64,000 nucleotides of DNA from Hyaloraphidium curvatum SAG 235-1 (GCA_025558095.1 JAIVFI010000012.1:558001-622000); one strand, 5' to 3'; shown: positions 2,326-33,064, counted from the stretch's first letter. Made by a program: numbers and translations. Notes: generated by a model not told the origin, from the sequence alone.

Positions 2326-2526
2326 TCACTTCGATATCTTCGACTTGAGCTCGTCGACCGAGGCAGCGGCCTCGTCCTTCAGCTTCTTCACGGCCCCCTT
2401 AATCTCGTCGATGTTGCTCTGGCTGAATGTGCGCGCCTCCCACTCCTTCAGGGTCTCACCGGCCGGCGTCAAACGGACGAGGCCGTAAATGATTGCCACG
2501 TTCAAGGCCAGGATGCCTGCGACCAT
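2326..2526 (-). CDS. Small membrane protein (5' exon uncertain)
   Basis: Hydrophobic segment VAGILALNVAIIYGLV followed by a charged helix; strong coding codon bias. Confidence 0.55.
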   Translation of the reverse strand: MVAGILALNVAIIYGLVRLTPAGETLKEWEARTFSQSNIDEIKGAVKKLKDEAAASVDELKSKISK

Positions 2527-3046
2527 GGCGTACTGAGTCCAGGAGAGCTTTGAGCTCTAGTGTCGCGAGACAAGCCGTCCGGGAAGGTAATCACGGCGCC
2601 CAAGAGCGATCCGCGAACGGAGTTGACCGAGCGATCCGAAGGTCCAAGCAAACGAATCGGAGCCATCAGCAAGACAAAACGAGCCGAAGAGAGTGAGCCC
2701 GCATCGCAGAGAGCCATCAGGCGTCAAAAAGCACCCGGATGGCGCGAAATCGGAGTTTGGCGGAGGGGGATCGCGTCAGCTCGAAACCGCGGGAGAATCG
2801 CAGCGGAGGTCGGACCTTGTCGCCTTTGTCGCTCATCTTGACGGTAGTGGATCCTTACGAACGACGCACCAGTCTTTCGGAAGGTCGTGGCGCCGGTGTG
2901 GATGAGGCGAGGCGCGCGCGCGCGGGCGGAATGTCCTTCGGCACAAATCGATCCGTGCCCAAGTGCACAGCGCTTTCGTGAGCCCGGGAAAAGCGGGTTT
3001 GCGGGCGCTATATATTCTAGCGCTTGCTGCGCTCCTGTACCAGTGC

Positions 3047-3979
3047 ATGGGAAGCGTCTTTTCGTCGAACAGACCCGCTGGACCGCCGATCCTGCCGATG
3101 AGCGAGACCGCCAACGGAACGACCCAGACCGGAGATATGGCACTGCAGAAGGCAACGTTTGCTGCGGGATGTGGGTGTCCGTGATCTGCAACGCAGCGTT
3201 GTGTCCTTGAGCTCGTGGGCCGACAGGTTTCTGGGGCACGGAGAAGTTCTTCCAGAAGGAGTTCGGCAAGGGCATTACGGTGCGTTGAGGCACATTCAGA
3301 ACCGCAGACGGGATCATTGGGCAGAGATCTTTGAGGAAAACGTTGCCGGCGATTCTCCCGGTGGTTGCAGGAGGCGATTCTCACCTGGGAAGACGCGAGA
3401 TCTCGTCTGCGCGGGAGACCCCCCATCGCAGCCGCTGACGCCCGCTGCCGCCGGCAGAGTATCATGGTCGGCTACACCGGAGGCCACACGCAGAACCCTA
3501 CCTACCGCGAGGTGTGCTCGGGCACCACGGGCCACGCCGAGGCCCTGCTGTTCGAGTACAAGCCCGACCTCGTGAAGTACGAGGACCTGGTCCACTTTTT
3601 CTTCAAGTTCCACGACCCCACGACGCCCAACCGCCAGGGCAATGGTGCGATTGCTTTGTTTGCCGGAGAGGACGCGGGTTTGGAGAGCTGACAATGTCGC
3701 CTCCAGACGTCGGCACCCAGTACCGCAGCGCCATCTTCTACCACACCCCGGAGCAGAAAGTGATCGCGGAAAGGGTCATCCCCGAGGCGCAGAAGAACTG
3801 GAAGCGCAAGATCATGACGGAGATCTCCCCCGCGACGGTGTTTTGGCCGGCGGAGGAGTATCACCAGCAGTACCTGGAGAAGAACCCTGGCGGCGTAAGT
3901 CCCCCAGCCTTCCCCCTCGCCCCCGGACGTGTCTAACAGGCGCTTTACACAGTACTGTAACCACTATTCGCGTTACTAA
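3047..3979 (+). CDS. msrA: Peptide methionine sulfoxide reductase A (5 exons)
   Basis: Spliced ATFAAG-C-FWG (GGA T|GT TTC TGG), [66 protein letters not shown]. Confidence 0.95.
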
Positions 3980-4396
3980 ACAAACAAGGACAAGAGCGCA
4001 GCGGGCAACGGGGCAGACTTCGAACGGCGCTGGTGCGACCTCTTCGATGGATCAGTCTTTTGTTTCTCAATACAACATTGCCTTCGATGAAGCATATTCC
4101 ATATGCGAGCTATACCAGCTAAAGCAGGCCAAGATGTGTCGAGTAGAATGGATCCATTTCGATGTCCTTCGGCATAAACGGGACACCGTTTGGCAGACCG
4201 CTAAGGTCAATTTGCTGCAACCTATCTTCCCACAACATCAATCATGGTTCACAGTTGATTTCGAATCGTAACCTTGAGGTATCTGCCACAACATCCTTCC
4301 CTAGTCCCCCTCCTTCCGCTACACCACAGCGCGCCAACGTCCCAGCTCTCCCTCCTCGGTGGTGTGCAACCAACCGCCCCGCTTTGGTATCACGAA

Positions 4397-7300
4397 TCAC
4401 AGAACGAAAAGAAACTGGCACGGCATGGCACGCGTCAGGCACCAAGGCATTACGGAGGGCGCGGCCAAAGGCGCACCTTGAGATCATCCTCGGTCAGCTT
4501 CGCCAGTGCGTCCATGTCCTTCCCGACCGTGCTCTCAAATAGCAGCTTCTTCTTTTCCTGGAGCTGGAGGATCCGGCTCTCTATCGAATTTTCGATGATG
4601 ATCCGCGTTATTCTAATCGAACGGGCGGTTAGATCGAGGCAACGACAGCTGCGGCCAAACGCACTTTATCGGACGGTGCTGGCCGAGTCGGTGAATGCGG
4701 TCCATCGCTTGATCTGCCAAGGAGACCACAGTCAGCTTGCGTCCCGCCCGAGGCAGCAATCGACATCGCGCACCCTCGACCGCCGGGTTCCACCAAGGGC
4801 TGCAGAGGTTCAATCAGCACAAGCAAGGCTACCAGAGACGGGCTCCACTCACTCGAGCATGAAGACGGCGGACGCCTCGGTCAGGTTGAGCGCGATTCCT
4901 GCGACGTCGGTTTAACAAAGCGTGAAGCGGACGTGCCGGAAAGACTCACCTCCAGCCTTGAGGCTGATCAGAAAAACGGTGATCTTCGGGTCCGTGTTGA
5001 ACGCGGTGATGATGTTGGCCCTCTAAAGAAAAAACGAAGCAGGCATTAATGCCGAAGAGCGAACGCGACCTGAGCGCGCAGGTTTCACCTGCTGCGGACT
5101 CATGCGGCCGTCGAGTTTGACGCAGGTAAACCCGGACCGCTGCAGCCTCCAGTGCACGAGGTCTAGGAAGTTGGTGAACTGGGAAAAGCAGATGGCCTTG
5201 ACCGTGGCGTCGTTGGACCGCAGGTTCTGGAGCTCCTCGACCAGGGCCTCGATCTTGGTGCTGCTCCTCCAGCGCGAAAAGTCCAGGTAGTTGACGATCG
5301 AGGCGCGCATTTTCTTGTCGGCCTCCGCGGCGTCCGAGAGCTGGACCCCGGGCTGCGACAGGTCGATGTTCAGGTTCCTGAAACACACTGCAGGTACGGG
5401 TCGCTCAAGGGGATGAAGACGGGGAGTCCAGCCAAGGGCCACCAACCGGGGCACTTGGGCGTGGGGTCGGCGCAGCCCTCCATGTACTGCGAGACATCCT
5501 CGCGGCAGAAGGTGTGCTTGCACGAGGAGACAACCGCGTCCTCCGCCGGCTCGTGGCCTGCAAACACCGCGGTCAGAAAGTAGGCAAGAGGACTGACAGC
5601 ATGCTTACAGATTCCGCAGACCAGGGCGTTGACCTTCTGGTTTCCGGAAACCAAGGCCTTCTTGGTGACGAGATCGGGATGGTTCGACGCCTGGCGCATC
5701 CGCATCAGCAGCTCGAAGATCTAGACGCAAAAGTCAGATCGGCTCGCGCAGCACCCTTTCGGTGACGGCAAGCTCACGTTCGCGTAGTTGTTCAGGACGC
5801 GATCCTCCGCCACGTAGGTATCGAACTTCCTCTTGGCGTCGCCGTAGAGGCTGTTGTACAGGTCCTCCTCCTCCTCCCCGAAGTAGTCGCGGCGGACGAT
5901 CACGACCCGCGGGGGCAGGCCCAGGTCGGCGGCGCGTTCCAGCTTGGTGCGGCGCAGCATGATCTTGTCGAGCAGGTGGGAAAGCTTGCGGAACGCAACT
6001 TGGCTGCGGTGGATGGCATGTCAGATCGATGGTCGATTCGATAACGAGAGCAACGAACCCGTCTTCCTGCTCCCCGCCGTAGTTCTGGATGGGCTTCAGG
6101 ATCTCGCGGTTCCACCAGCAAAAGTGGGCCATCGGCTTGTGCCCGCAGTCGTCGCAGTTCCGCCGGTCCGAGAAGGCCCAGGAGAGAGACTTGCAGCTGC
6201 ACCCGCTGCAGAAGTAGTATGCGAACGGATCGCACCTGGGGAAGGGGAGGTTCAGAATTGAGGCCGGACCGGCAGCGAATACCAATACCACTCACTTCAG
6301 GAAGCGGAGCAGGCTGTAGAGCTCCCCGACCCTGTTCTGCAGCGGCGTCCCCGACAGGCACCACTTCTTGTCGCACTGGAGCGCAAACACCGCGCGCGCC
6401 GTCGAGCAGCTCCTGTCCTTGATCGAATGCGCCTCGTCCAGCACGATGCGGTCGAACGCGATCGAGTGCAGGAGCGACTTCTCCTTGACCAGCTGCCCCT
6501 TGCGCCGGAAGCCGTAGTGCTGCTTGCGGTGCGAGGACTCGACGATCGAGTAGGTCGAGAGCACGACGTCGCAGGACGTCAGCTCCTCCGCCGTGGCCGG
6601 CCGGTCCGAGCCGTGGTAGACCATGACCTTGAGCGTGCCGGGCAAGGTGTGCTTGAGGATCTCCTCGTTCCACTGGAGCAGCGCCACGGTCGGCGTCAGG
6701 ATCAGGTTGGGTCCGAGCCGTTCCTGCGCGACCAAGAGGGCGATCGTCTGAATGGTCTTGCCCTGTTGAAGAGTCGACAGGACGGGATCAGTGCGAACTC
6801 GTTTCCTGGACTCGAGCCGTCAACGTACCATGCCCATCTCGTCCGCCAGGATTCCGCCCTTGAAAGCAGAGTCCTCTTGCTGCCTCATCCAGGCCAGCCC
6901 TTCGAGCTGGAAGGGCAGGAGCTTCGTCGTCAAGGCGGGCGGTTGGGAGGACGCCTCGCGCTTGGTCTTCGCCTTGCGATCGTATCGCACCGACAGGTCC
7001 ACGGCCGACCACACCTGGTGCACGGGACGCATCAGCAAAAGGAGATGGAGCTCCGCCACCACGAATTACCTCCTTCAGCTCGGGGTGGTGCTTCTCGACC
7101 TTTGCCTTGGTCGTCGCCTCCCTCTTCCGCCGCGCCTCTTCGAGCTTCTGCCGCCGGGCCGCGGTGTCGGCAGGAGTAGCCCTGGCCCTCGGTGCAACAC
7201 GTGCGACTCGCTCCTCCTCCCCCGATTCGCTGTCCGACGAGTCGGTGCCAGTGGATGAGCTTTCTTCGCTCGACGATGAATCCCCCGAGTCCGAGTACTC

Positions 7301-26209: not shown

Positions 26210-29200
26210 TCAGACTGCGTAACCCATGTCGCGGAGCTCCTTCTGCACCTTGTCCCAGCCCTTTGCGATCTTCTCGTCCAGCTCCCAACCCCGCCTCTCT
26301 CGCATCCTCTCCAGTTCCCTCAACACGACGGGTCCAAAGAACGTGAGCGCGAGCCCGTGCTGCTGCTCGTCCATCAATGGGGGCAGTCCCGCCCACAGCC
26401 TGTCGAGCACGGCGGGGAGCGCAGCGAGCCCGAGCTCGAGATCGATCGGCTCCCGGCCGCCCGAGGCGCGCCGCACGAGCTCGCATGCCGAGGCTGCCAA
26501 ATCACGAAAGTCCTTGCGATCGTCGATCCTGACGCCGATGATCTCCATCGCGGCCGCCAGAGCCTTGATGGCGCCGAGAGCCTCCCTGTTGGAGGGTGCC
26601 GAGGGACCTTTGTTCGGGCCCGGGCCCTCTGGAACGGCGACCTCCGAGTTCAGCTCATCCCGCCGCGCCTTGCCGAGTAATGAAACCGCCTGGGCGAGCT
26701 GCCCGTCCGTCAACACCTGAAGAACCAGCCCGCCCTCCTTCTGCAGCCACTCGATTGTGGGGTGATGGGGGTCCTGGATCCACACAACAGCGGCGTTCCT
26801 GCAACGCGTCATAAGGACAAGCCACGTCGTGAAGCCATCGCGACACCGATCCCGTTCGGCTTCGGCCAAATCTTCCCCGTTGTCCAGCTTGCGGATCAGC
26901 TTCGCGTCCGTGCCCAAAAAGGGCTGGTCCAGCACGCACAGCGTGTCAAATTCCAGGCCGCGGCAGTCTTCCAGCCCCAGCACTAGCAGCGGCTTGATCT
27001 CGGGGTCGTCCACCAGGACCGGATCTGGGGCTCCGGGCCCGTGGAGCAGGAAGAAGTTTTGCTGGCTGAGCTTGAGCAGCTTCTTGGCCGCTTCGGCGTC
27101 CGGGCACACCAGCACGGGCGGTGACTCCCACAGCGACGAGCGGACGACCTTGTCCACCGAGAAATCGTCGAACTCGGCCTTGAAGTGGCGCTTAAGCCAC
27201 CGCTGGAGCACCGAGTCTACGACTTTCAACACGCCGATCGGGCACCGGAAGTTGATGCTCAGCACAATGCTGCTGTGCTGCAGCGCAACTCCGGCCACGT
27301 CGCAGGCCTCGACGACAGCGGGACGGACCCCTCTCCGCCTAGCCGCCGTTTCTTTGCCGACGCTTTGCTTGGAATCAAGTCCAATGACGACGGATTCCGG
27401 GTGGCCGCTCGACAGGGCCAGAATTTTAAGCTGCACCGGCGTGATGGACTGCGCCTCATCGATCAGAAGGGGGCCGAAGTGCTTGCGCAGGGCCTCCATG
27501 TGCGCGGGATCGCCGAGCCCGGTGCGGTAGCCTTCCCAGATCCCCTTGAGGTGCTCCCAGAGATCCTCCTCGTCCTTCAGCCCCTCGGTCTTCTTCCAAT
27601 GCCGGTACCAATTGACTTCACCGGCGTCAAGCCTGTTTGCCCACATGCGTTGTAGCTTCGCGGGCGTCGCTTTTCGGTCCCTCCGCCGGGCCGCCTTCTC
27701 GAACTCGCACTGCGTGACCGGTTTTCGCCATTCCGAAGGCCACAAGAGGTCAATGCGGTCCTGCACCGTCACGGCATCGACGTGGTAGGTACGGCTGATC
27801 TTCTCCCGCAGCCGCGGTGTAGGAACAATGATCCTTGCGCCCGGGGTTGCACGAGCGATTTCTGACAGCACTGGTAGACATTCCGGTGCGTCAATTGGGT
27901 ACACATGCGGTATCGCGAAGCTTGTGCTCACCCGTTGTTTTGCCGTTGCCCGCGGACCCCTTGAGGAAAAGTGCCACCTGCTGCGATCTCGCGAGCTTGA
28001 TCGCCTGCGGCGGTCAAAACTGTTAGGAAGGATAATTCCGTTGACTGCGGGTGTCCAGCAATGCAGACCTCCAACTCCTGTCGAGTGAGAACCGGCCGGC
28101 TCCGCCCAGTTCCGAGATCGGTCTCGATCAGCATGTCGAGGTTCCCCAGGAACCTCCGCGGCAAGAAGAACCCGTCTCCAAGTTCCGGATTTGCAGAGGC
28201 TTCGCGCTTGAAAGCAAGCGCAGTGTCCCGCATGGCCACCGCCAGCAGACGGTCGTGGCGGAGCCCGTCGGCGTCCAGTTCCGCGGCAGTCGCGTCGCGG
28301 TCGTCCGACGCGAGGAAGTTGGGGCCCAAGCGGTCGATCGCATCACGGATTTCTGCTGCCCGATCGATGACGCGGTTGAAGCCCTGGATGGACGGGGAGA
28401 ATAAGCGCCAGTTCACGCGGATCTGGTCCGCGCAACCGACCTTGTGATCCAGCTTGATGGAAGTGATGAGGAACACCCCAGGTTCCAGCTCCACGTAGAA
28501 GACCCGTTCCTGCTTATTCAGCCGTCCCTCGAACGTTCGGTCGCGGACCTTCTTGCGGAATTGCCTGTCAACGACGTCAGTGATCACGGTTGAGAAAGGA
28601 GGCAATGCTAGACATACAGCTTCTGACGCCCGGAGAAGATGTCCAAGACCTTGCTCTTGATGTTCAGGCTCTCGATCAGCCTGTGTACCTGAGCCCGCAC
28701 AAGGATTCGACCCCGCGGGAGCGACAATGCAGCCTCTTCGTCGTCATCCGGAAGAGATTCTAATCCGCTGGCCGCAACACCGGGAATTGGCGTATCATCT
28801 GGCAGCTTCCAGTCCGGAAAGAGTGCCTTGAGCAGGTATTCTGGAGGCATCTCCCCCGTGATACTCTGATCCAGGGCCGCGAGCCACTCCTCCAGACAAG
28901 AAACGAATTGCAACTCGGTGGAACGCGATGCTTCTTCCGCCGAAAGGGGTCCCAGAACCGAAACAGGGGCCAGAGGGGCGACCGCCTTCACCGTCTCCCA
29001 AATGTCGACCCGGAGAACGACCCGAGCGCGACCTGCAAGGGGACGGTCTGCATGCCTGGGCGGCCTGCGCTGGCTCGATAGGGGACGCGTCCACCGAAAC
29101 ATCCAATCCATATCCTCGGCCGAAGGGCTGCTGCCAAGCGGGATCGGGCCCGTGAGACTCGCCGTCCGGTGTTGCGCCGCTGCGCCCGCTTTTCGCCGCT

Positions 29201-31690
29201 GTCGACCGAGAAGGCAAAGACATGCACCTCAAGTTCAGCAATCGGCTCGATCGGAACGATCTGGAATGACCTCGAAGCACCCTTGCCGGACACTTCCAGC
29301 TTGAGGCGCAGGTCCTTCCATTCCGCTTCAGGCAGATTCGGAGAGACCGTCGAATGCCCGCCGCGAGCGGCAAAAAGAACGTCGAACTCGACCCCGCGCT
29401 CATCGATCTTGACGGGGTCGACATCCGGCCACGGGGCCGCCCTGTACTCGAGCCACCGCTTGCGGTCGCGCCAGCGAGGCCACCGGCGCTCCAAAAAGGC
29501 GACCACGAGACGAGCCCTTGGATGCGAGACAAGTCGGGCCAGGCGCTGCTCCTTGAGCCTCCGACGGATCCGAGCAAGGTAGCGGGAAAAGACGGCGGCC
29601 CGATGGATCCTGAACGCCATCGCCGAGACCCTCGCGAACTCGTCCTTTCCCAGGCCCGCGAACTTTGCCCACGCCTGCTGCCGGCGGATGTCCTCCATCA
29701 GGCGGGTCACGTAGCCGTCGTCCGCGCTGGCGGGCATGTGGAGCTGCTCCCTGATCTGCCCGACCGTGCCCTCGAGCCGCGCCCGCATGTGGATGCGGTA
29801 GCACGAGTCTGCGATTTTCCCAGCCTCCGTCGCCAGTTCTTCGGAAGCTTTCCGGCCCAATGCGCCGTCAGCTCCCCCAGAAGCTTCGCAGAGAAGCGCG
29901 ACGTGCTGGGCAACGCGCAGGGCATGTTTTGTAGCCGATTCCAGCTCACTCAGCCTGTCCTTTGCACGGCCCTTTGCTGCGGATTCCGACAGGAGCGCGT
30001 CTGGTTTCTCGGCGAGCATGACCTCGACCAGCGACAGCACGCCGGAGACGGCCCTGCAGGCCTCGAGCAGCTCGACCTCCGGGACGCGGTCCAACGAGCC
30101 GTACGCCTTCTCCAACACCTGAACGTAGAGATCCGCCGTGCCGAGCAGGTCGCGGAGGAGCGCGCGCTCCGATGCGAGCACGCGGCGGGCTCCCTTGGTT
30201 TCGGCCAGGCCGGCCAGGTGCCCGCAGAGGGAGAAGCACACGGCCTGGAGCATGCCCGAAGCGAGGAGATTCTCGGCGTGCTCCACGGTGAGGCGGGCCG
30301 CGTCGACGATCTGGGAGCCGGAGAACCAGGTCCTTTTGGGCACCGCGCCGAGGAGCTCCACGAGCTTGCCGCCCAGGGCGGCGCCCGCGAACTCCTTGAG
30401 CAACGGGAGCCCCTGCCTGGCGAACCGCTCTTTGGCATCGTGGTAGAACGCTTGGTCCTCGTCCGTTGGAAACAGGTGTGGCTCCGCACGTGTGGTCTCA
30501 CCGCGGAAAGGGACCGAGGGAAAGCAGTCCTTCAGCTCCCTGGATCTGGGCAACTGCAGCAACGAGGCAAAAGGGTGCGCACGCGTCGTCAGAACCTTGT
30601 CAAAGTTACCCAGTTCCTCTCTGAAAGCACGCAGCCGCGATATCCTCGTCATCTGAGCCTTCTCCGTCTCGGTGGCAACGGGATCGTCGGTATCGACCGC
30701 GCTCCGGGTCGGCTTCTCCTGTCCGGCGGTCGCGGATGCCTGCCACGCTTCCTTGGTCGACTCGAGCTTCTTCCGCATCTCCGTTGCCTTGGCAGTTGAA
30801 TCCGTGAGCTGCGTCTCCGCTCTCGCTTTCGCCTCCGTCGCCCTGGCTACGGCATCCTCGGCCTTCTTCAGCCTCTCCGAGCTCTTGGTCGCACCGTTGA
30901 CCTTTGTATCCGTCCGTTTGCCGCCCGGATGATCCGGTGAAGGAGAACCGGCGCCGTCGGGCTTCGCCTCCGACGGCTTCCCGGCTTCGTCCGCATCCAG
31001 CTTCTTCAGCGCTTCCAGCTTCGCCGCCGCGTCCGCCAGCTTAGCCGTGGCCCTCTCCAGCTGCTGCTTGTGCTTGGCGACCGCCTCGTCCGCCCCGGCG
31101 ACGGTCACCCTCTTCTGCAGCTCCTCCTCCTTTTTGTTCCACGCCGTCTTCGCGGCCTTTTCGGCACCCTTCTTCGTTCGCTCCGCGTCGGTCTTGGCCT
31201 CCGCCTTCCGCATCCTGACCGCCTCCTCTCTGCCCTTCCTCTCCCGGTCGAGCCGGGGATCGATCGCATCCAAGGCCGCGGAGGCGTCCCCCAGCACAGC
31301 GACGTAGGCATCCGAAGCGTTCCGCGGGTCCAGATCCTGCCACGCGCACGTCGTGGCCCTGATCTCCGCTTCGGTTTTCTCCCTCTTCTTGTCGACCTTG
31401 GGCCTTTTGCGCGTCGGTTCGGGCCAGAGCGCCCCGGCCGCCCCTGAAACCGCCGACGCGACGACCTTCGCCACGCCCCAGACGCCCCCGGCGACCCGCT
31501 GCACGAACGACGGCCCGTCCGCTGCGCCGTCTCCCGGCTGGGTGGCGCCGGGGGCCGGCTCGTCCTCCGCCGCGGGAACCCGCCGAGCGTCCCCCGAGGG
31601 CCCGCCGCCGGGCTCGGACGCCCCCTGCTTGGGCTTGTGCGGCCGTCGCCGGCGGGGTGGCCGCGTCGGACGCGGAGACGCGGCGTCCAT
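26210..31690 (-). CDS. ~1,746-aa protein: N-terminal coiled-coil/helical region, RelE/ParE-like domain, SF1 (UvrD-like) helicase; proposed exons 31690-29095, 29032-28618, 28564-28069, 28004-27932, 27870-26210
   Basis: Four GT-AG introns of 53-64 nt keep the frame (5,241 nt total). Motifs: LKGSAGNGKTT, IVPTPRL, LLIDEAQ, GLDSKQS, LSINFRCP, CRGLEFD, VLMTRCR; RelE-like FEGRLNKQERVFY...VFLITSIKLDHK. Confidence 0.75.
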
Positions 31691-32071
31691 GGCCGGAAAC
31701 GGGGGGGTCGCACTTGCGGCGCGCGCACGCGTCATCACTCGGGCTGTCGATCGCCCCCGCGGTGCCTGTCGGACAGAACACGTCCCTCGACTCCCATTCG
31801 GCCATTCGTCTCCATTCTTTATTGGTCGACTTTGGCCACGATCGGGCACGATTGCCCCGATTCCATCGGTTAGAGGCGTTCCCATACCAGGTCGCCCAAG
31901 AATGGGCCCATCCACACAATCGAGGTCACAACAAATGCCAGCAGATGCGATAGAGCACTCTTGGCTTCGACGAGGTGCCACGGCTGGGGGAGTCAGCTAT
32001 ATCTCGAACGTGGTGACGCGGGACGCCCCGTGATCGCGGCCCGGGAGACCCCTCCACCAACAACGGCCGCC

Positions 32072-33064
32072 ATGCCGGGCAAGCCGCGGCGGCGGCAGCG
32101 CGAGCCCTCCGCCGACTCGTCCGCGCTCGCGGCGCAGCTCGCCACCCTCGGACTGGAGCGGCGCGACGTTGCGGGCGACGGCAACTGCCTCTTCCGCGCG
32201 CTGTCCGACCAGCTGCACGGCCACGACGGGCTGCACGCGCGGCTGCGCGCCGACACCGTGCGGCACATGCGCGACCACGCGGGCGACTACCGCGCGTTCA
32301 TCGACCCCGACGTCGACGCCGGGCTCGGCAGGAAGGGCCGCCGGAAACACACCGGAGACCCCGCGGAGAGCGGCTTCGCGCTGTACCTCGAGAACATGGC
32401 CCGCGACGGCGTGTATGCGGGCAACCTGGAGCTCGTGGCGTTCGCGAAGGTGGCCGGGAGGGACGTGGTGGTGCACCAGCTCGGCCAGGCGCCGTGGGCG
32501 ATCCGGTGCGAGGGACCGAAGACGGGGCCGGCGCTGCACATCGTCTACCGCGACTGGGAGCACTACGAGTCCGTGAGGAGCATCGCCGGGCACGCGGGGA
32601 AGGAGGGCGGGGTGGAGTGGCGGGACGTGGCGGATCCCGCGGCCCGGAGGGCGAGCGCCGAGCGGGAGGGACGGACAAAGTGGGGCCAGCCGGTGGCATG
32701 GGGCACCGACGACCCCGATGCCGAGGCGGAGGAGGTCGACGTGTCGGCGCTCATGTCCTCGTACGGCGAGGATTCGCCGTTGGAGGAGGACGTGCCGGCG
32801 CGGAGGGATTCGCTGGAGCACTCGCGCGGCCTGCCGCCGCTCCCGCCGCCGGAGTCGGCGCCGCCCGCGGGGAAGGAGAAGCGGCCGTCGAAGCAGCAGC
32901 TGCGCGAGGCCAAGAAGAGGGCGCAGAAGGAGGCGGCGTTGGAGAAGAAGCGGGGGCGGAGCTCCACGAACGCTTCGGACGCGTCGGCGTTTGCCCCCAC
33001 GGGGAGGGGCGACGCGGATGGGATCGAGGAGCTCGTGGGCGGGATGAAGGTCGTCTGCATATGA
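32072..33064 (+). CDS. OTU-domain deubiquitinase (OTUD3/Otu2-like)
   Basis: GDGNCLFRALSDQL, YAGNLELVAF, LHIVY..WEHYESVR. Confidence 0.92.
   Translation: MPGKPRRRQREPSADSSALAAQLATLGLERRDVAGDGNCLFRALSDQLHGHDGLHARLRADTVRHMRDHAGDYRAFIDPDVDAGLGRKGRRKHTGDPAESGFALYLENMARDGVYAGNLELVAFAKVAGRDVVVHQLGQAPWAIRCEGPKTGPALHIVYRDWEHYESVRSIAGHAGKEGGVEWRDVADPAARRASAEREGRTKWGQPVAWGTDDPDAEAEEVDVSALMSSYGEDSPLEEDVPARRDSLEHSRGLPPLPPPESAPPAGKEKRPSKQQLREAKKRAQKEAALEKKRGRSSTNASDASAFAPTGRGDADGIEELVGGMKVVCI

Follow-up and report, generated by a model that had tools for sequence, protein, structure and literature searches.

In prokaryotes, toxins of the RelE family are a textbook means of stopping translation, and the question raised by one locus of the chytrid-grade fungus Hyaloraphidium curvatum SAG 235-1 is whether a eukaryotic gene carries such a device in front of a helicase. 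The locus lies on the minus strand at positions 26210-31690 of a 64,000-nucleotide (nt) stretch of contig JAIVFI010000012.1 (558001-622000 of that contig; hereafter the window). It is predicted from its sequence to comprise six exons and five introns, with a coding sequence (CDS) of 5,184 nt, corresponding to 1,727 codons and a stop. We propose that this is an intact gene, that its product combines a domain of the RelE/HigB fold with a UvrD-like helicase of superfamily 1 (SF1), and that this product is an RNA-cutting effector. The gene model and the domain architecture, taken by themselves, are very probable; the whole statement, with the effector function included, has slightly less than an even chance of being correct. 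Gene structure, fold and helicase class come directly from the comparisons presented here, and the mechanism is what we infer from them.

The genome contains four copies of the RelE-like domain, which are found on contig C11 (protein P0002), on contig C9 (protein P0003), in the window gene, and at C12:555588-558220. Two full-length relatives of the window gene are H. curvatum hypothetical proteins that map at 100% identity to other contigs of the same 31.9-Mb genome. The window gene is a third full-length member, divergent at about 50% identity to its paralogues and colinear over its whole length with those of 1,816-1,859 amino acids (aa).

Four open frames are present on the minus strand (31981-28988, 29111-28608, 28605-27928 and 27931-26210). 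The sequence-only reading had joined them through four GT-AG introns into a single frame of 5,241 nt. Read base by base from the minus strand, the four junctions are present with fitting phases and the frames join, whereas the length of the frame had to be revised to 5,184 nt because a fifth, in-frame intron of 57 nt is removed. Exon 1 (29095-31690; 865 codons plus 1 nt, with a GC content at third codon positions, GC3, of 0.81) lies inside a 997-codon open frame and has a putative start at 31690. It is followed by intron 1 (29094-29033; 62 nt, GTGGAC..CCCCTTGCAG, GC 0.71) and by exon 2 (28618-29032), which encodes the end of a beta-sandwich, a linker (LLKALFP) and, from position 28709, strand 1 and helices 1-2 of the RelE-like domain. 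Intron 2 (28617-28565; 53 nt, GC 0.49) interrupts this domain, is specific to this copy, and exhibits a GTATGT donor, a branch-like CTGAC and an ACAG acceptor. The beta-sheet of the domain (QFRKKVRDRTFEGRLNKQERVFYVELEPGVFLITSIKLDHK) is encoded by exon 3a (28441-28564), which matches the family profile with an E-value of 7e-14 and is about 56% identical to P0002. The additional intron (28440-28384; GTCGGT..CCATCCAG, ending in CCAG) also lies inside the domain and, being in frame and free of stops, had remained hidden from the open reading frame (ORF) track. Its 19 codons (VGCADQIRVNWRLFSPSIQ) correspond to an exact gap in the alignment of exon 3 to P0002, its removal restores the family-invariant H-K-G-F, and a phase-0 intron after LNHK is present at the same position in the P0002, P0003 and L019 loci.

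Exon 3b (28069-28383), which is 43% identical to P0002 over 168 columns (E 1e-35), encodes the helix at the C-terminus of the RelE-like domain (GFNRVIDRAAEIRDAIDRLG, as far as about 28318), a linker that is acidic and probably flexible, and a conserved lead-in to the helicase, LPRRFLGNLDMLIE. The next intron (28068-28005; 64 nt, GC 0.53) is again copy-specific and reads GTCTGC, a branch-like CTAACA, and CGCAG. Exon 4 (27932-28004), with only 73 nt, reads AIKLARSQQVALFLKGSAGNGKTT, aligns with the paralogues, and encodes the Walker A motif GSAGNGKTT, as had been proposed. The last intron (27931-27871; 61 nt, GTGAGC..CTACCAG) occupies a position conserved in the family: the window gene and the P0002, P0003 and L019 loci all have a phase-1 intron there, directly after GKTT. 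Exon 5 (26210-27870) encodes helicase motifs Ia-VI and a C-terminal helical tail, and ends with the stop codon at 26210-26212.

Coding periodicity is observed in all exons, with a GC3 of 0.66-0.81 against a GC content of 0.27-0.51 at second codon positions in this GC-rich genome, and three of the introns are clearly GC-poorer than the exons (GC 0.49-0.54). For junctions 2, 3 and 4 and for the intron at 28440-28384, the spliced products align without indels to family members that lack the given intron. Across the junction at 28068-28005, QELE|AIKLA corresponds to an uninterrupted QELEAIKLA in P0002, and the splicing of intron 2 introduces no indel against P0002, P0003 or P0006, the last of which is encoded by one uninterrupted 5,580-nt ORF. 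In exon 5, positions 26582-26641 add about 20 Pro/Gly-rich residues to the C-terminal tail, an insertion that is absent from relatives and flanked by an in-frame GT and AG; a sixth in-frame intron at 26641-26582 was considered and rejected on account of its poor splice sites and of the Pro/Gly-rich, loop-insertion appearance of the segment.

The predicted product would thus consist of a low-complexity N-terminus, a helical domain, a beta-sandwich, the RelE/HigB-fold domain, an acidic linker, the UvrD-like helicase and a helical tail. The N-terminus of about 950 aa had been described as helical, which holds for a domain of about 335 aa that starts at 30466 and is common to the paralogues; besides this domain, exon 1 encodes a low-complexity stretch of about 410 aa, rich in Ala, Lys, Glu and Pro and unique to the window copy, and a beta-sandwich that begins at about 29395 (GVEFDVLF). 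With hhalign, exon 1 is homologous and colinear to the N-terminal domain shared by the paralogues (probability 97.2%, E 2.9e-11, 349 columns), which, together with the colinearity of the remaining exons, supports the view of one long spliced gene. The paralogues show weak, below-cut-off Pfam matches to IQ motifs, TPR repeats and a MATH-like beta-sandwich, and they carry a C-x5-C-x4-C-x3-H zinc finger with a weak Pfam match of the Nab2 type. The window copy is devoid of the region comprising the TPR repeats and the CCCH zinc finger. The shared helical domain and beta-sandwich probably serve in the recognition of a partner or target.

The RelE/HigB-fold domain (28318-28709; about 92 aa of coding sequence, split by two introns) had been likened to the RelE/ParE superfamily by its residue pattern, and structure prediction followed by Foldseek, both run on the paralogue domain, supports a fold of this superfamily (BECR). 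The AlphaFold2 (AF2) model of P0002:1090-1200 has a predicted local distance difference test score (pLDDT) of 79.8 and a predicted template modelling score (pTM) of 0.74, and DSSP assigns to it strands (E) and helices (H) in the order E12-15, H17-25, H28-37, E46-50, E53-57, E63-70, E73-80 and H86-103. The same order of elements is found in an independent model of P0007, the fold having been tested on paralogues in both cases. A Foldseek search of the PDB returned almost exclusively toxins of the RelE/ParE superfamily (best E 8.3e-4), and all 50 of the structural matches listed for the P0002 domain model belong to this superfamily. Among them are the HigB toxin of Streptococcus pneumoniae (score 10.2, root-mean-square deviation 2.4 Å, 94 residues), HigB1 of Mycobacterium tuberculosis (9.9), the RelE domain of Cami1 (9.4) and ParE toxins (5.3-6.6). 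The Atlas clusters closest in shape are RelE PF06296 and Gp49 (TM 0.66-0.67), and in a language-model search the nearest named clusters are ParE_like (PF24732) and RelE/ParE (0.89).

Eight sequences of the domain that are 36-63% identical, the window gene included, share the residues E55, R57, N59, R63, H83, K84, F86 and K/R88. Most of the invariants are charged or polar: E-G-R, N, R, E, and H-K-G-F with K/R after it. The window copy keeps all of them, the one change being that of N82 to D. In the model, they are located where strand 2 ends, in the loop between strands 2 and 3, where strand 3 begins, and in the loop between strand 4 and helix 3. In the mRNase members of the superfamily, the catalytic constellation comprises basic residues on strands 2-3 and, beyond strand 4, Lys, Arg or His together with an aromatic residue. 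The catalytic residues of HigB (TAC) are E66, R68, N73, R77, K95 and K99, and the active-site residues of pneumococcal HigB are R68, R73, F90 and K92 (PMC9098466, PMC7984235). The family invariants fall on the same structural elements as these residues, which suggests that the pocket of the H. curvatum domain may be equivalent to that of HigB.

The helicase motifs Ia (VPTPRL, 27826-27809), II (LLIDEAQ, 27469-27449), III (LDSKQS, 27379-27362), IV (INFRCP, 27256-27239), V (RGLEFD, 26962-26945) and VI (LMTRCR, 26815-26798) are all found in exon 5. Walker A and motifs Ia-VI are intact in the window gene and conserved across the family, in line with the intact SF1 helicase of the sequence-only reading. 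Exon 4 gives weak Pfam matches to AAA_30 and nSTAND. Exon 5 of the window gene, taken alone, scores 22.0 bits against the Pfam UvrD-helicase family (PF00580; cut-off 23), compared with 34.1 for P0002 and 23.1 for P0007. P0007 also passes the threshold of PF09848, the Schlafen group-3 helicase family (29.8 bits against 24), which the window exon does not match, and PADLOC returned weak matches to AbiO, Nhi and GajB. The fold was modelled for P0007:170-800 (631 residues, pLDDT 69.5, with 75-92 in the helicase core). The structural matches of this model include UvrD (24.2 and 22.8, about 378 residues), HelD (20.1), SLFN11 (20.1), PcrA (19.6), SLFN14 (19.4) and Rep (18.5). No Upf1 chain is present among the best 50 VIA entries for this model; Upf1 chains appear among the first Foldseek E-values, at a lower TM than UvrD. 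Motifs IV (NFRC) and V (RGLEF) are of the UvrD type, and the assignment to UvrD-like SF1 helicases is supported. A family-specific insertion of about 100 aa (W..R..WY..WK..KDE.DLW) is located between motifs Ia and II. In the P0007 model, the acidic linker of about 90-100 residues between the RelE-like domain and the helicase has a pLDDT below 50, which is consistent with a flexible tether.

The family, looked for with single exons or with public paralogues as queries, is small. A phmmer search with exon 5 against 1.84 billion representatives yielded 14 family clusters, all apparently eukaryotic. A profile of the RelE-helicase module, searched against 5.8 billion proteins, found six family members, and the only addition was a subfamily of 938-1,075 aa on AT-rich metagenome contigs; the same search returned three canonical UvrD proteins with E-values above 0.4 and without the N-terminal domain. 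On one of the AT-rich contigs (ERZ27280226, 840-1808), a zf-MYND ORF with a weak nucleotidyltransferase-like match ends 9 nt before the start of the family member P0017. The two may form one gene, and the presence of the zf-MYND ORF directly upstream points to a eukaryotic origin of this subfamily. Two further contigs, L018 and L019, which come from the unrelated runs SRR23967301 and SRR26194948, carry a cytochrome c1 gene adjoining the family member (4094-5080 and 2469-3419, respectively), and this adjacency suggests conserved synteny among related organisms. On L018, the family member is a single intron-free ORF of 1,859 codons.

Within the H. curvatum genome, a C-terminal fragment of the family is found on contig C14. 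The fourth copy of the RelE-like domain is shorter, starts upstream of the window at C12:555588, and has its 3' end at positions 1-220 of the window (plus strand). It is about 33-35% identical to P0002 and P0006 in long blocks and up to about 50% in short blocks; its RelE-like domain is intron-free, and three later frame changes may correspond to introns or decay. In the C9 locus, the tail of the public P0003 model appears out of frame after residue 1736 (local positions about 1700-1900), and the genomic frame continues as RRARQDSEADAGGNTIF..., similar to other family members, so that the annotated last intron of P0003 is probably wrong. An OTU-like cysteine protease gene (31961-33064, plus strand; PF02338, E 8.6e-12) is arranged head to head with the helicase gene, the putative starts of the two genes being about 270 bp apart.

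The sequence-only reading had also pointed to bacterial conflict proteins in which a RelE-like domain is joined to an SF1 helicase, for which CnuH of CoCoNuT systems belonging to types II and III-A provides a documented case. CnuH comprises an SmpB-like OB domain, a RelE/colicin D-like RTL domain and a UPF1-like SF1 helicase (eLife 2024, PMC11090510). As in the H. curvatum family, the RelE-fold domain is directly N-terminal to the helicase and was found only by structure, with no sequence conservation with known toxins, and CnuH is a predicted RNA-targeting conflict protein (PMC11090510). In contrast, CnuH is bacterial and encoded in an operon with the McrBC-like CnuBC, HEPN partners and the effector CnuE, whereas the H. 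curvatum gene is eukaryotic, monocistronic and interrupted by introns. The helicases also differ: that of CnuH belongs to the UPF1-like clade, whereas that of the H. curvatum family finds its best matches in UvrD, PcrA and Rep. No sequence relationship was found between CnuH and the H. curvatum family, and no OB fold was seen in the N-terminus (helical, beta-sandwich, TPR and CCCH in the family), for which no specific search was made. The two RelE-helicase fusions may be independent.

The further claim that the gene derives from a bacterial-type module found no backing in the searches. For the helicase and for the fusion alike, the profile search among 5.8 billion proteins yielded no relative from bacteria or archaea, scanning bacterial and archaeal genomes led to no confirmed locus, and tblastn of plasmids gave weak matches only, the best of which, a 719-aa helicase of Bacillus thuringiensis, proved to be an ordinary PcrA-like protein. 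A bacterial UvrD-helicase cluster of 849 aa in the ESM Atlas matches the domain model (TM 0.63) as well as the helicase, and by this likeness of shape it may represent a bacterial RelE-UvrD fusion. As no bacterial relative is recognizable by sequence, a bacterial origin rests on the fold and on the single precedent of CnuH; a domesticated bacterial module is plausible.

With these components, the helicase would most likely load on, or remodel, an RNA or ribonucleoprotein substrate with the use of ATP. The tethered RelE/HigB-like domain, which keeps the family-invariant E-x-R..N..R...H-K..(K/R) constellation, would then cut the RNA. By analogy with the structurally closest proteins, this RNA would most plausibly be ribosome-bound mRNA, and translation of the target would be shut down by the cut. 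RelE of Escherichia coli is able to cleave on eukaryotic ribosomes (PMC11980606). A role in conflict, either antiviral or directed against selfish elements, would fit better than a housekeeping role because of the narrow and patchy distribution of the family, the turnover of its paralogues and the variability of their N-termini. A far more specific proposal is that the gene encodes the first bona fide eukaryotic ribosome-dependent mRNA endonuclease of the RelE/HigB type, nuclear, intron-bearing, multi-paralogue and fused to a UvrD-like helicase, which would act as an innate-immune effector of translation arrest or abortive infection and would have arisen by a fusion independent of CnuH and of the Schlafens; in this full form, the proposal is unlikely.

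Several observations weigh against an RNA-cutting effector encoded by an intact gene. UvrD-like helicases are classically DNA enzymes, and the CCCH zinc finger, which is the only other hint of RNA binding in the family, is missing in the window copy. A RelE domain placed inside a protein of 1,700 aa may be an ill fit to the ribosomal A site. The AF2 model of the domain was built from a paralogue, with four sequences in the alignment, and the correspondence with the HigB pocket was drawn from residue pattern and secondary-structure register rather than from superposition. No Pfam family was matched by the four domain sequences at E-values up to 10, the profile search of PDB sequences with the domain returned nothing relevant, the PF06296 hidden Markov model had no match on the genome, and no match was obtained to the curated RelE/ParE sequence families (PF05016, PF06296, PF05015, PF24732 and others). 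No antitoxin-like inhibitor was identified, the OTU-like protease gene being the only neighbour examined and no search for an inhibitor having been made. Regarding the gene itself, the exon junctions are predictions from the DNA alone. Junction 1, correctly singled out beforehand as the least certain, has a poor donor and a 62-nt segment of 71% GC, and the frame is kept with either of two donors (29100, 29094) and either of two acceptors (29048, 29033).

The absence of sequence likeness to any active toxin family is also an argument for a fairly improbable alternative in which the RelE-fold domain is inert and the helicase is the sole enzyme, positioned or regulated by an adaptor that binds RNA, the ribosome or a protein. 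The activity of the RTL domain of CnuH was likewise left undecided by its authors (PMC11090510), and HigB2 and HigB3 of M. tuberculosis exhibit the RelE fold and are nevertheless non-toxic (PMC9098466). However, subfamilies with no more than about 36% identity all keep the charged and polar residues at the positions that match the HigB catalytic pocket, which is more conservation than a simple scaffold would need.

That the locus is not one functional gene, but a decaying or split paralogue, is a less probable explanation. Here junction 1 would remain unspliced, the first ORF would end at 28988, and a shorter product would start at about 29111. The weak donor, high GC content and several alternatives of junction 1 are in keeping with this, as are the loss of the TPR and zinc-finger region in the window copy, the family fragments on C14 and in the upstream C12 copy, and the public annotation, which comprises only a 478-aa fragment (P0001, covering exon 5 residues 75-552). 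A search of public proteins with the exon 1 ORF found nothing, and none of the proteins of 548-1,745 aa covers exon 1. Nevertheless, the right frames stay open for 5.2 kb over the six exons, whose identity to the paralogues is about 50%, and all the helicase motifs and all the invariants of the RelE-like domain are kept. The splicing of junction 1 restores the last strand of the beta-sandwich at the right spacing (...G-RARVVLRVDIW, compared with ...G-RLVIRFRL in P0003), and a donor similar to its GTGGAC, namely GTGGGC, is used by the public P0003 model. Even the shorter product from 29111 would contain the RelE-helicase module.

Equally doubtful is a housekeeping function in RNA surveillance or ribosome quality control, as a lineage-specific analogue of Upf1 with SMG6, or of Cue2/NONU-1. 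These systems use the same ingredients, an SF1 helicase and an endonuclease acting at the ribosome, and the paralogues carry IQ, TPR and CCCH modules that are typical of cellular regulators. Core surveillance factors, in contrast, are normally single-copy and widely conserved, whereas this family has an extremely narrow phyletic distribution, four divergent copies, additional fragments, and N-termini that vary from copy to copy. A DNA-directed function, in which a ParE-like topoisomerase poison or DNA-end binder would act with a UvrD-type DNA helicase in repair, recombination or the restriction of foreign DNA, is the least probable of these explanations and very unlikely, despite the ParE_like PF24732 clusters nearest in the language-model search, the DNA helicases UvrD, PcrA and Rep as best structural matches of the helicase, and the weak PADLOC matches to the DNA-targeting defence helicases GajB and Nhi.

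With an RNA-cutting effector as the preferred reading, the gene can be placed among known systems. The ribosome-dependent RelE/HigB mRNA interferases (S. pneumoniae HigB, 6AF3/6AF4; M. tuberculosis HigB1, the TAC toxin, 7NBU; PF06296) have no detectable sequence likeness to the H. curvatum domain, which differs from them in that it lies midway along a eukaryotic protein of 1,700-1,850 aa and is encoded with spliceosomal introns and without an operon. Dependence of the endoribonuclease activity on the ribosome is a property of RelE, HigB and YoeB. In Cami1, a ribosome-dependent RNase ancillary to type III CRISPR (8PHB/8PHJ), the RelE domain is fused to a CARF regulator that senses cyclic oligoadenylate rather than to a helicase, and this protein is bacterial and has only about 375 aa. 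The nearest functional parallel in eukaryotes is provided by the group III Schlafens (SLFN11, SLFN13 and SLFN14), which exhibit the same layout of nuclease, linker and SF1 helicase. Their nuclease is the Schlafen core (AlbA_2-type) and not a RelE fold. A common ancestry of the fusions is not implied. Compared with the SF1A helicases UvrD, Rep and PcrA, the H. curvatum helicase is very divergent, and no bacterial orthologue of it was found. Helicases go unmentioned in a recent survey of RelE/ParE toxins with one or several domains, which lists no more than a handful of eukaryotic toxin-antitoxin fusions, of doubtful provenance (PMC11980606).

In H. curvatum, the predicted RelE fold is found inside a clearly eukaryotic gene, with spliceosomal introns at conserved positions, four paralogues, and IQ, TPR and CCCH modules in the family. 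The combination with an SF1 helicase is almost absent from other sequenced organisms. The window gene adds to this family a third full-length copy, which is essentially unannotated, since the public annotation of the genome misses most of its 5.2 kb, and whose module is interrupted by two extra introns. Should the domain be active, H. curvatum would possess a eukaryotic protein, complete in itself, that may cut mRNA on 80S ribosomes, and the family would offer a testable case of convergent or transferred immunity of the 'RNase plus SF1 helicase' type across the domains of life.

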